DNA of 64,000 bases from Amoeboaphelidium protococcarum X5. Taxonomy: Eukaryota > Fungi > Aphelidiomycota. The notes under the pieces are model-generated. The model ran no database searches. It worked only from the letters and a program-made list of their open reading frames with translations, and was not told the origin of the DNA. The DNA is taken from assembly GCA_023515725.1 (NCBI GenBank), contig JALDTO010000135.1, forward strand, positions 99,413-163,412, in the 5' to 3' direction. Positions 1-6,619 of the stretch are shown here, one piece after another (positions within the stretch are counted from its first letter, which is position 1; each line of letters opens with the position of its first letter). Made by a program: the position numbers and the translations under genes.

Positions 1-1
1 T

Positions 2-1357
2 GGCGATGGTTGTGCCAAGTGTAAGAAGCCATTACTTCCCGGCGGTAAAGCTGTTCGTATAAATGGTTAGCTGATGCACGCCGACTGTCTCAAATGTGGT
101 AAATGCAACAAGACAATAGCCGGTGGTCAATATTTTGAAGATTAAGGTGTATGGTATGACGAGGCGTGCTATATGGATGTATTCAGTCCCAAGTGTCGCA
201 CCTGTAAGCGAGCCATTCTAACTAATGACAAGTACACCACGTACCAGAGTGAAAAGTATCATATCGATTGCTTCCCTAAATGCAGTGTGTGTAAATCCGG
301 TCTTTTGAGTGATAGTAGCGGTGATAGAGGTGTTAGATTTAAAGAGATTGATGGTGTGTTCACTTGCGACAAATGCATAGAGAAGCGTTACGATCCCGTC
401 AATAGAGAGTCTGAGTTGGCCAGACGGGAAGCGAAAGCTGGTATTGGTAACAGTGATGTATTTGATAAGTTTGGAGTCACTTATGGTACACCTGTTGCCG
501 CTAGTAAGAGCTAGAATGTATAAGGTGTGACGAATAATAATCTTTAGGCCAAGACTGAAGTACCTAACGCAAGTAATAAAACCAAAGACTTGCTATCCAA
601 GTTGAGCAATTAAATTCCGGCATCTGCTGTAAGTAATTCTTCTGTGCCTTTGAAAGTGCCTCCACCACAATCTCCTACTAAAGTTACTGAATAACCAAAG
701 ACTACTGATAGTTCCAATAACATCAAGCCTTTGGATCAGTCTTAGCCTAATAAACCAAGGAACACGTTTATACCGTCTTAGGAGTCTTTATAAAACAGTG
801 TGGGTAAAATGGACTCTAAATATAATGTTACAGGGTCTGGTGTCTCAAATACTAGTAAAGCTGTCATTGGAGATTAGTTTAAATCTACTGAGTAAACCAA
901 AGCTCCTATTGGTGAAAGTAAATCTATTCCAAAGTAGAGCAATACTGTTAGCAGCTCTGTTAAAGAAACTCCTGGTTAGAGTAAAGTTGTCCCTTCTGCT
1001 CCCAAAGCTCCTGAACAAGTGGTATCATCCTAGGAGTAGACGCCTTTGAGAAAGTCATCTAGCTCTAGTGCTCTGCCAACCAATCTGCTGGATCAGATTA
1101 GAAAATCTTCGATTGAAAAACTGAACAAGGTGGATGATGTAAGAGATGCTTCTACGCCATCATTTCTAAGAGAAGAATCTAGTTAAAATTAATCATCTGG
1201 TCTAAAGGCATCACTGTCCAAGTCTTTGAGTAAGATGAACTTGGCATCGAGTGGCGATGATCTATAGAGTGAGTTGTAGCGCTCATTAAGCTCTAAAAGG
1301 CTCGCAATGAGAGAAGCTTCACCTGAACGAGTATTTGCTGACAAGGACGATTGGTGA
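2..1357 (+). CDS. LIM-domain protein with C-terminal WH2-central-acidic (WCA/VCA) module; 5' end lies outside the window
   Basis: With TAR=Gln the frame is open from 2 to TGA 1355-1357. Zinc fingers: CAKC..HADC, CGKC..DEAC, CRTC..HIDC, CSVC..CDKC. Then a Pro/Ser/Lys-rich linker, WH2 NLLDQIRKSSIEKLNKV, amphipathic helices, and the end ..FADKDDW*. Confidence 0.85.
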
Positions 1358-1422
1358 AAGGTTTTGTGATATATTTATGAAATTCTATACTTTATGACAG
1401 CTAAATTCATTCACTAAATGGT

Positions 1423-1445
1423 TCTCTCTCTCTCTCTCTCTCTCT
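1423..1445. repeat. (TC)n microsatellite between the convergent LIM-WCA genes
   Basis: About 11 TC units, seen directly. Confidence 0.9.
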
Positions 1446-1504
1446 GTATACTGTATTCCATATGCTCTTATCAGTAGCACCATGGTAAAGTCATAGCACT
1501 AAAA

Positions 1505-3772
1505 TCAATCCCAATCATCGTCAGCCTCATTACCTCCCTCTTCAATATGCTTTCTCCTATTGTTCAAGTGTGACGATATATTGATGACAGCCTCTTCCGG
1601 TCCATCATCTTCCTCTTCAACGGCAACTTTAGCCTTCATCTTATTCAGAGACTGAGCCAGCGCAGATTACAAGCCACTCTTGCCAAAAGCACTTGCAGAC
1701 ACTTTACCTCCAGCTCCGGCAGCCACGCCTTTACCTTGCGCAGATATCGCTCCATTTCCAACGACATTATCAACTTTCTTGAGAGTCTGGACTGACGCCT
1801 TGCGAATTTGAGACAGCAAATCTCCCTTACTTTCGGGCAACGGCTCTGTGTTGGAGTGAACAAGCGGTGGCGGTGCAGACGCGGTAGATTATTATGAAGA
1901 CGGAGGTGGAGGTGGGGCAGGTAAAGACGAAGCTGACGACTATTGAGGAGGCAATGGCAACTACGCTCTCATCGAATCTGTCAGACTGTGACTTCTCTCG
2001 GGTAGTATCGGCAGAGTTGGTGGCAGCTGCGGCTTATTCTTAGGCATTGATGGTGGTGGCGGCAATCCATTCGGTAGAGAAGCTGGTGGCGGCAACTGGG
2101 TGGGAAGTATGCCAAGTGGTGGGATTTAAGCAGGTGGAGGCAGGTTATTGATCGCCACACTCTATCGGGGAGTATTGGATTTAGATGGAGTAGATATTGG
2201 TGGTGGGAGGGACTTGATGTCCGGAATAGACTATTGTGATGGCACACCAGGCTGATTTTAAAAAGATCCAGACTATGGTACCCCAAAAGCCTACTGCAAA
2301 TGATTAATAGATGGAGGCTTATTCATAGCCTATCCAGTAGGACTATTTACACCACCAGATTACACACTTTGTAAGTGCATCTTTGCCATTTTTGATGGCA
2401 GTGTCTGACTATAATCTCCATAATCCGAAAAATTCTATGGAGTGACAGATTCCACCTGTGTATTTGGTGAACTAGAGCTTGCCCGCACAGTCCCAAAAGT
2501 CTAAGTGTTAGACTAAGATCTTGTCTGAGTATTGACGCGTACGGAATTCTAACCACTTGGCAGAGGGCTTTAACTTCCTTGGAGCTGCGGTAAAGTATTA
2601 TTGCTTTAGTTTAGTGGCGTAGCAATCTTGGAGATTGGATTACTCGTAGCATACAGCTCAGGCCATATTGAAGATAGACAGTTGATGCACGCGTAATATC
2701 CCTCAGGCAATTGATCATACTACACACCTGCCAGAGACCTATTACAATTAAAACATCCCATACACTCTTGATGGAATAGCAACTCCCCAAATGGCAACAC
2801 AATTTATCCCAATGGCTTAGTACACTGATCACATACGAAGCACTCTTCGTGGTACGTGGACCCAGTAGGCAATTACAGAGTTGGCTCCAAGGGAAGTAAC
2901 TGAATCTTACAATGAGCACAGGCTGGAAGTGTAGCCTTAATGTGATCATAACATTCAGTGTGGAAATACTTTTTACGCTTGTGGACAAATTTCAGAGGCA
3001 ACACCTAATCACAGAGCCCACAAGTGAAGCATTCTTTATGAAAGTTTGAACCATCTTTTAAGCCTATAAATCCATTCCTTTGATCACAAGCCTTAGAGCA
3101 TTTAAGACAAGGCGGTCCCTGAGGTTAAAAATTTTGTTGCTGCTGTTACTGATATTACATCTGTTATTACTGTTTCTGCATCTGTTACTATTAGTGCATT
3201 TGAGGCTACTAAATCTATTGCTGCATCTGCATCTAAGGTGGAAACTATTGCTATTGCTATTATTACTACTATTACGGCCTCTATCCAGCCTACATGGCGC
3301 CATAGTTATTACCAGCAACTTGGCCCATTGCCACAGGATTTTGTTAATTCTATGCAACATTCTACTACTGAGGTTGATACGAATACATTCCAGCACCTTG
3401 CTGTTACTGTAACATATTTTACTGTGCCATAGGATTTTGCAGTGCCGCAGCTTGACCATAACCTAGAGGTGTCTGTCGTGGTACAGCAGGGGATCCTTGT
3501 TGCATCATCATCATTTACTATTATTAAGGCAGTCCAGCCATAGCGTTGGCTCCATATCCGCCGGGATTGTTATAATTCTGCATCTGTTACTACTATCCAG
3601 CATATTGTTAATTGGCACTCATCTAAGCCAGAGCCAAAGCTGGATGCTGATTACCCATCATATTATAGCCATTCTATTATCCACCCGCCATGTAGCCGCC
3701 TTACGGAGAGGGACTCTAAGGCAACGTGCTGAAACTTTATCCTGCAACTACTTCCTTCTTCTTTTTAAACAT
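1505..3772 (-). CDS. LIM-domain, proline-rich, WCA/VCA protein (about 755 aa, no intron seen)
   Basis: ATG 3772 (MFKKKKEVV) to TGA 1505 in one frame. Q-rich N-terminus, five zinc fingers (CLKC..HKEC, CGLC..HTEC, CAHC..HEEC, CDQC..HQEC, CFNC..CINC), polyproline tracts, WH2 KGDLLSQIRKASVQTLKKV, end ..HLNNRRKHIEEGNEADDDWD*. Confidence 0.85.
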
Positions 3773-3993: not shown

Positions 3994-5038
3994 TCAGCGA
4001 GCGTACTGATTCCGAAACTGTTGTTATTATTACTGATAGAGCTGCTACTGCTGCTGCTGCTACTGCTACTACTACTAGTAATACTAACCGCCATTAACCA
4101 TTTGCGCCTGATGAGCTAGTGAGCCTTGGGATCCATAGTTATTGTGACTGTTTAAAAGGGCACTCTGAGCTGTCGGCGCTCTTTGAGGCGCACCCTACTG
4201 TGGCACATAATTCTGCGGCACTTGATACCCATACTGATTTTGCTGCACATATTGTTGTTATTGTTGCTGTTATTAAAAGTAGGCAGCATTAGCATATTAA
4301 TCCTGTGCCTATACAAATGGCTACTATCTCGGCTATGTCATTGCCGGTTATCCATAGTATTACTGTTGTGGGACTGGATCCGGATTAGAGTCGTGTTATC
4401 CATTCACAGCCGTGATCTTTTCTTCTTGCCGCATTTACTGATAGAGACACGGATCGCAAACGTAGCCACCGTCTTGTAGTTGACTGAAATTGAGACCGTT
4501 CAGGTTGCTGTTGCAGAGAGAACAAATCACGCACTACAATTGATTAAAAAATGATTATTATGTGATATTAGCAATAAATATTTATATTACCTCTTGATGA
4601 TAAAATAAGCTATTATTCTAATAAAATCTATCGGATAATTACTGGCCACATCCATCGCAGACGAAGCATCTTGCGTGAAACTTCATATCATTTCCCAGCA
4701 CAACGCTAACCTCGCTACCAATTATTGGCCCTTCGCACTTGAAACATTTAGGCGCCGTTGCTTTGGCATTGGCATAACACTACATACGGGCAACTTTAAA
4801 TATAGAGAATTAAAATACCAATATAAATAACATAGTGCCATACCTCTGTATGATAATATTTCCCATTTTTAAAAGCGAATTTCAATGGCATCTCATTTTA
4901 ACAAATGTCACAAGTGAAACACTGACGGTGAAACGATGTGCCATCTCGCAACGCTATGAAGGCTTCATCTTCGCATTACTGCTGACATTTTGTACAGTAT
5001 GTCGTTGCTTAATTTACACTTTATTAATTCTAATACAT
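3994..5038 (-). CDS. LIM-domain protein (2.5 LIM) with Gln/Tyr-rich tail; exons 5038-4844, 4779-4591, 4533-3994
   Basis: MYQNQQSVNQATTYCTKC...; GT..TGTAG introns 4843-4780 and 4590-4534 restore the LIM cysteines. The LIM region resembles the 1505-3772 gene (FIALRDGTSFHRQCFTC vs FIGLKDGSNFHKECFTC). Ends QFRNQYAR*. Confidence 0.85.
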
Positions 5039-5287: not shown

Positions 5288-6619
5288 TCAATTGTTAGCC
5301 CCATTGTTAATCAAAATCTGACGCGTGTCTATCAGAGACATGTCAGTGATATTCTTAAACAGCAAATACTTGCTTTCAGGAAGATCTTTCAGAACTTTGT
5401 TAAAGCGACCTTGACGATTCTTTATCCAACCGACAGCTGGCGAAATGCGAATAGTCTGCAAAGCAATTTACGAAGCAAACTCCGGGTTCAACATAATGCC
5501 AGTCTAGAACTCTGGGTCCTTCATGACGCTGTCACCGCTCAAGATGTAAGTCCTGTTAGGCATTCTTCTAAACAACTTTGCGAACGCGTCAGTTTTCAAT
5601 TGTTAAGAATTCACAATAGATAGAGTCTTGGATAACTCTGCAGGAGAGTCGATATTCACGGAGAATTTGTTTACAGCGACCGGACCAAACGGAATACTAA
5701 AATTCTTGACAAAAGCGAGATTAGCAGATGCCATTGGCCATGGACCAGCACTCAAGAAGTAGAACATTGGCATACTAAAATTGTCACCAGAGTGAGGAAT
5801 GCTATCGTTATACCATCTCTATACCTATTGGACAACGCCAGGTACGGGGACGTATTTGCGGAATAAAAGAGATTTGATTGCTTCCAAACCTCTGCCATAC
5901 AACTTCAGAGTTTCGTCGACATCAAAGACAACAGTCAGCCCTTTCTAACCGTGCAGAAATAATTCAGCACTGGTACTTAAACCTTCAAATTAACCATTGA
6001 CAGCCAGCTATGATCCATCGTAATATCCATTAACTTCAATTAGAAGGTCGAGCTCAATAAATCCATCTTAAGCTGTAATAGCCTCAACAGCCGTCGAGTT
6101 GTATGAGACGACGCGATTTTCCGCAACGGAAGAGGTGGCATTTAATATACGCACAGACTTGCGATCATTCACGTTGGAGCTCAAGTCTAAGCGGACAGAG
6201 CGGTTATTCAGATCCTCAGCGAAAAAGTGTTTGAAGTTGTTGAACTGCAATGTCTTTTCCAGTGGAGGGAGGTAAGAATCAGGGCCATAATCATCATTGT
6301 CAATGTCGACGAAGGATTGAAATCTGGCAAAATTTCCAGCGTCATCTGTATACTGCAAAGCAACGGCTTATACATGTACAGAGTAAACTCTTGGACATGC
6401 ATGTTCAGAAGTGCACGGCAGCTAATACTTCAACACACCATATGACGGGAATAGCACCAGGTCCTTTTAGCCAAATGGCATCTAACTAAAATTCTCAAAT
6501 TCACGGCTATTGATATCATGACGCCCAAACAACGCGCCAATATCGATAGCAATCACCGAATTGATGTACAATCCGGCAATTATTGATGCAGCTAGTGTCA
6601 GATTCAAAAATGTCTTCAT
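5288..6619 (-). CDS. App1-like (DUF2183, HAD-fold) phosphatidate phosphatase with predicted signal peptide, 443 aa
   Basis: Hydrophobic N-terminus MKTFLNLTLAASIIAGLYINSVIA; DxDxT motif VVFDVDETLK; YFLSAGPWP; YILSGDSVMKDPE, comparable to App1 GDSGEKDPE. Confidence 0.7.

Follow-up and report, generated by a model that had tools for sequence, protein, structure and literature searches.

LIM-domain genes with tails resembling those of class I Arp2/3 nucleation-promoting factors in the aphelid Amoeboaphelidium protococcarum

Families of Arp2/3 activators are told apart by the module that targets their C-terminal WH2-central-acidic (WCA) tail, and none in the surveyed families uses LIM domains (PMC3298513). 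In a class I nucleation-promoting factor (NPF) the central (C) helix occupies the barbed-end groove of Arp2 or Arp3, a Trp enters a basic pocket of ARPC1 or Arp3, two central-acidic (CA) segments are accommodated per complex and the WH2 motif (W) delivers actin (PMC7274804, PMC10944109). Two genes, here termed A and B, join LIM domains to tails of this type. They lie tail to tail in a 64,000-nucleotide stretch of DNA from Amoeboaphelidium protococcarum (the window, G000:C135:99413-163412) and probably encode lineage-specific, LIM-addressed, paralogous class-I-like Arp2/3 NPFs.

A. protococcarum is an amoeboid aphelid and a parasite of algae. The assembly of 23.6 Mb contains a second copy of the region on contig C179, with 91% identity to that on C135. 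TAA and TAG are reported to encode Gln in this species (PMC6299283); where only one of the two copies has a TAA or TAG codon, its partner is CAA or CAG in 14 of 19 codons, and an ARPC2 profile matches with 319 bits across nine in-frame TAA/TAG codons. Read with translation table 6, gene A is an open frame on the + strand (window 2-1357) and gene B one on the - strand (3772-1505), the latter identical to the public protein P0003. Both close with TGA, after DKDDW and EADDDWD respectively, and 147 nucleotides separate the two stops. The first-pass annotation of this DNA had described convergent LIM genes ending in WH2-central-acidic motifs and in these Trp-bearing termini, hidden by the standard code; the frames and motifs are found where it placed them, and standard-code open reading frames do split both genes into short pieces. 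The ATG of gene A lies about 200 nucleotides upstream of the window (L011:6798, equivalent to G000:C135:99210), and a public gene model for A from a different strain, FD95, is unspliced and has 520 residues. Besides the Arp2/3 subunit ARPC2 the genome encodes a canonical WASP (L003/L004), WAVE (L007/L008) and WIP (L005/L006), to which genes A and B are additional. The features of the locus are listed in Table 1.

The tails were compared with the WH2, C and acidic patterns of Kollmar et al. 2012 (PMC3298513), with WASP and WAVE from the same genome as controls. The WH2 pattern comprises a helix, a short linker with a hydrophobic residue and L-[KR]-[KR]-[VTA], whilst that for C is three hydrophobic residues four apart, an Arg/Lys cluster and a closing hydrophobic residue (PMC3298513). 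The WH2 of B is a complete match, that of A has a single mismatch (Asn at a basic position), and both have six-residue linkers. There follow two C-like helices per tail, C1 and C2, a correction to the first-pass annotation. C2 of A fits the pattern completely and C2 of B does so except for Ala at the first position; in each, the basic residues and the hydrophobic one that closes the motif are in the register of this genome's WASP. Both C1 helices have hydrophobic residues spaced by four and no basic doublet. The distance from W to C1 is 23 residues in A and 33 in B (WASP 23, WAVE 19), that from the start of C2 to the Trp is 30 and 26 residues (WASP 33, WAVE 28), and spacers of 6 and 11 residues part C1 from C2. 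This arrangement, W-[C1-spacer]-[C2-acidic end], fits an internal duplication of C, because C1 is placed at the W-to-C distance of WASP and C2 at its C-to-Trp distance. On pairwise comparison the A and B tails are homologues of one another (z 9.9).

Shuffling either tail 200,000 times gave no instance of an ordered WH2, C and terminal acidic Trp, a result that is indicative only because the patterns were partly loosened after the sequences had been seen. Genome-wide, DDW-stop or [DE]DW[DE]-stop occurs 26 times and the long frames that it closes are only WASP, WAVE, A and B, two of each; the scan was judged on long frames and short last exons could escape it. An AlphaFold model of the gene B tail, of moderate confidence, puts one helix each at W, C1 and C2, the three loosely arranged (predicted local distance difference test, pLDDT, 63; predicted template modelling score 0.24). 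The nearest atlas clusters of this tail are labelled WH2/WHAMM (score 0.86), which we take as a lead only.

Are the tails maintained? Between the C135 and C179 copies both are under strong purifying selection, with ratios of non-synonymous to synonymous substitution rates of 0.078 (A) and 0.016 (B), alongside 0.065 and 0.014 for the respective LIM regions; the linker of gene A gives 0.555. Among four copies of gene A in two assemblies the WH2, an extension of 13 residues that follows it (up to window position 1171) and C2 are invariant as protein, with 14 synonymous-variable codons. The acidic end has two amino-acid-variable and no synonymous-variable sites, with DDW retained in all four. In one copy (L032 near 8415, GCA_023515745.1) a deletion of 8 nucleotides removes the TGA and the frame runs on for about 76 codons past DDW, the result of either decay or assembly error.

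That same assembly, of strain FD95, provides a 493-residue public model of A which fits a 50-nucleotide intron at window positions 1230-1279, deleting C2 and the terminal Trp. We discount the model because its copy is the one that lost the TGA, which would force a predictor to seek another stop. The second FD95 copy has the unspliced 520-residue model and a poorer donor, and of three changes downstream of the putative intron all are non-synonymous if it is spliced whereas two are synonymous if it is not. On these grounds the intron was rejected. Given also the pairing of TAA/TAG with CAA/CAG and the identity of P0003 with table 6 gene B, it is very improbable that translation of the tails departs from the reading given here, whether through this intron or a wrong code.

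Gene A might nevertheless differ from B in function, with B alone an NPF and A a LIM-anchored WH2 protein that binds actin monomers, carrying a WIP-like extension past LNKV and a degenerate CA segment. A Pro-rich linker had been annotated in both genes; B has one, whilst the linker of A is Ser/Thr-rich with just 9% Pro. The Asn in the LKKV element, the near-neutral acidic end with its amino-acid but not synonymous variation, and the stop-less copy point the same way, as does a resemblance, judged by eye, between the residues past the WH2 of A and those past the WH2 of this genome's WIP. On the other hand C2 of A is invariant and the best WASP-register match of the four helices, and no copy has lost DDW. 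We regard a purely monomer-binding role for A as improbable.

Several observations weigh against assigning either protein as an activator. The first-pass annotation had called for a Pfam check on LIM and WH2, and whilst LIM3 of A scores above the LIM cut-off, both WH2 matches fall below that for WH2 (E-values of 4e-4 for B and 0.014 for A). An acidic C-terminus, also annotated in both genes, is clear in B and weak in A, net charges being -7 and a nearly neutral -2 compared with -9 in WASP and -10 in WAVE of this genome. W and C2 are 43 (A) and 60 (B) residues apart, exceeding the W-to-C distances of 23 in WASP and 19 in WAVE. The tails score weakly against the genome's WASP (z about 3) and not significantly against its WAVE (z about 1.5), and one of four copies of gene A has no stop. 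Arpin carries a CA segment and is an inhibitor or dual regulator. Such a segment is also present in the dual regulator Crn1 (PMC10944109). With their non-canonical W-C-C-A layout the tails might bind actin and Arp2/3 yet serve to tether, damp or inhibit the complex instead of activating it, if the monomer is misplaced by the doubling of C or by the length of the W-to-C2 stretch. The existence of a CA-bearing dual regulator, the W-to-C2 distances and the weak end of A favour this alternative, which we consider unlikely. An intact, conserved WH2 ahead of CA is the layout of an activator, C1 of A stands at the canonical distance from W, and the Pro-rich region of B precedes W as it does in WASP-family proteins. 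The LIM-WCA architecture, the code and the NPF-like tail originally proposed are upheld by the fit to the patterns in PMC3298513, by the WASP and WAVE controls and by purifying selection, and LIM-WCA is, as judged from these comparisons, a real and conserved domain combination with an unusual doubled C.

If A and B are NPFs the following mechanism can be envisaged. The WH2 would bind an actin monomer, the groove at the barbed end of Arp2 or Arp3 would receive C2, the ARPC1/Arp3 pocket would take up the terminal Trp, and the three together would turn branched nucleation on. A part in amoeboid motility or host-cell invasion, put forward in the first-pass annotation, is hypothetical. The LIM array would serve as the address module in place of WH1/GBD or SHD, its target being a partner protein or filamentous actin, and could allow actin branching at sites outside the rule of Cdc42/Rac. 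The Pro-rich region of B would recruit profilin-actin or SH3 partners. B would be the stronger activator because this region adds partners; A is likely weaker or conditional because its acidic end is weak and it has no Pro-rich region. C1, most simply a duplicated C segment, might contact the second Arp site, bind actin or fold the tail back, and bridging two Arps may call for longer C1-C2 spacers than these.

Tandem LIM domains were annotated in both genes; we count three in A, of which LIM2 and LIM3 are in the window, and 2.5, or five zinc fingers, in B. Over window 2678-2920 (- strand) B chains three zinc fingers by two-residue spacers, as does the neighbouring LIM gene C described below, and this stretch can be read as two overlapping LIM domains; fingers 4 and 5 of B align to complete FHL LIMs. 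A single-sequence AlphaFold model of the gene B LIMs gave no usable fold (pLDDT 35). Could such arrays direct the tails to strained filaments, as had been suggested? The aromatic site was placed using what we take to be the domain limits of FHL2. LIM regions that sense strain have at least three tandem LIMs (10.1101/2020.03.06.980649), linkers of 7-8 residues, the rule with which A, B and a paxillin-like gene of this genome (L015) were compared here, and, within every LIM, a Phe (or Tyr) that is conserved in the second finger (10.1101/2020.03.06.979245). The linkers are 15 and 8 residues in A, 10 in B and 9, 8 and 8 in L015. The aromatic site holds Tyr, Tyr and Phe in A and Phe and Val in B, and is aromatic in many other LIMs of the genome too. 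Force targeting of A and B is therefore weakly supported, and we treat it as a possibility and not the default, because A follows the rules in part and B poorly, whilst the paxillin-like gene fits them better. A bolder proposal, that W-C1-C2-acidic acts as a pseudo-dimer filling both NPF sites of Arp2/3 whilst the LIMs seek strained filaments, giving a force-gated branched-actin activator common to aphelids and other early fungal lineages, we hold to be improbable.

Relatives were sought widely. With the WH2 piece of B, phmmer against 1.8 billion representatives returned only the cluster to which B itself belongs and a single repeat protein without relation to it, and word-index searches with the B tail, the B LIMs and a fragment alignment found B alone. 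The cluster takes its name from A. protococcarum, its public protein in that search has 750 residues, and P0003 is among its members. These searches also missed the paralogue A and ordinary WH2 and LIM proteins, so absence of relatives elsewhere is not shown by them. Three metagenome matches to the B tail (L033-L035) were dismissed as chance; they lie in DNA of 64-66% G+C and lack WH2, LIM and a terminal Trp. No match was found in the viral contigs searched, nothing significant in a PDB sequence search with both tails, and nothing usable in an atlas search with residues 215-755 of B. Full-text literature searches, in which coverage of subscription journals is thin, found no LIM-WCA protein, in line with the first-pass annotation, and the word LIM is absent from the WASP-family survey (PMC3298513). 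The combination is apparently undescribed. A candidate new family had been proposed; LIM-WCA has so far been seen in two paralogues of one species, which does not establish a family.

Table 1. Features of genes A, B and C. Positions are those of the window; gene A, which reads through TAA/TAG, was searched in segments free of stops and gene C one exon at a time.
Feature	Position	Residues	Strand	Remarks
Gene A, 3' part	1-1357		+	single exon; whole gene 519 residues; TGA 1355-1357
Gene A LIM1	upstream of window	4-56	+	
Gene A LIM2	11-169	72-124	+	
Gene A LIM3	194-376	133-193	+	Pfam LIM 29.1 bits, above cut-off
Gene A WH2	1085-1132	430-445	+	Pfam WH2 E 0.014, under cut-off; Asn for Lys/Arg in LKKV element
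Gene A C1 (first central-type helix)	1202-1243	469-482	+	
Gene A C2 (second central helix)	1262-1309	489-504	+	complete WASP-register match
Gene A acidic end	1310-1354		+	Trp last; net charge -2
Gene B	1505-3772		-	755 residues; single exon; identical to P0003
Gene B Gln-rich head with basic N-terminal patch	3110-3772	1-221	-	34% Gln
Gene B LIM1	2951-3109		-	Pfam LIM E 6e-11 over three stretches of LIM region
Gene B LIM2	2762-2920		-	within same Pfam LIM match
Gene B extra zinc finger	2678-2755		-	two residues past LIM2
Gene B proline-rich region	1865-2227	516-636	-	30% Pro across residues 520-645
Gene B WH2	1772-1819	652-667	-	Pfam WH2 20.3 bits, E 4e-4, just under cut-off 23.1
Gene B C1 helix	1625-1672	701-716	-	
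Gene B acidic spacer	1592-1618		-	after C1; no Trp
Gene B C2 helix	1544-1591	728-743	-	RRK cluster
Gene B acidic end	1508-1543		-	Trp penultimate; net charge -7; ending pattern of this genome's WAVE
Gene C, third LIM paralogue	3994-5038		-	no WCA tail; predicted exons 5038-4844, 4779-4591, 4533-3994 (public models)

Exon 1 of gene C shares 50% identity with LIM1 of gene B. A rough tree built from individual LIM domains (53 columns, long branches) clusters LIM1 of A, LIM1 and LIM2 of B and both C exons (94/84), and among the LIM proteins of the genome the LIM region of B scores best against gene A. For these reasons A, B and C look like a local expansion. The tail of C is Gln/Tyr-rich, and each of its two predicted introns falls just ahead of a LIM's final Cys ligand, where A and B are intronless. 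The other LIM loci examined, about ten distinct genes with frames read (a lower bound, several having introns), have no WH2 or DDW-type end. Two of the longer frames show, by eye, other combinations: 1410 residues with C2-, C1- and RasGAP-like regions and four LIMs (L017:227-4456), and 885 residues with LIMs and RGS- and PX-like regions (L028:3086-5740). The gene adjoining the LIM cluster (window 5288-6619, - strand) encodes a phosphatase of the App1 type (PF09949) whose N-terminus is hydrophobic. App1 of yeast is a protein of actin patches, and the proximity may or may not be chance.

A LIM-addressed activator, if that is what A and B are, would add a path to branched actin that is free of small-GTPase gating, and this in the phagotrophic sister group of the fungi. 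The need for both CA sites of Arp2/3 to be filled simultaneously has been called open (PMC10944109), and the doubled central helix offers a natural test case; the tails, at about 100 residues, are of convenient size for assay.

How do A and B compare with known systems? They share with WASP and Las17-Wsp1 the Pro-rich region (B), WH2, an amphipathic C with its basic cluster, an acidic end with Trp, and the W-to-C and C-to-Trp spacings; they differ in the LIM array and the two C helices, and the canonical WASP is encoded separately. WAVE/SCAR, WASH and WHAMM/JMY likewise carry a C-terminal WCA, and B ends in DDW[DE] like this genome's WAVE, but SHD, WAHD and the WHAMM N-terminal domain are lacking and the canonical WAVE is again a separate gene. 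C1 of A and B presumably recalls the C of WHAMM/JMY type. Pfam applied to full-length B and the pieces of A gave LIM and WH2 only, with no WH1, no CRIB/autoinhibitory domain and no SHD, WAHD, IMD or GBD before the WCA. WIP and verprolin resemble gene A in having WH2 with a C-terminal extension, but the WH2 of WIP is N-terminal, there is no CA segment, and WIP is separate here. Zyxin, paxillin/Pxl1, FHL, testin and Prickle also have tandem LIMs, and the three LIMs of A share the aromatic residue at the conserved site; in A and B, by contrast, the LIMs are N-terminal or central and the linkers depart from 7-8 residues. No WCA tail is described for strain-sensing LIM proteins in the literature compared. 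A precedent is provided by WAWH and WAML, WCA proteins of protists whose N-terminal module was new and which were named as families on architecture alone (PMC3298513), although these carry GBD/WAID or IMD and span several species. Because the N-terminal domains that define WASP, WAVE, WASH, WAML and WAWH are absent, A and B are not members of these families, but they would nonetheless work in the manner of a class I NPF.
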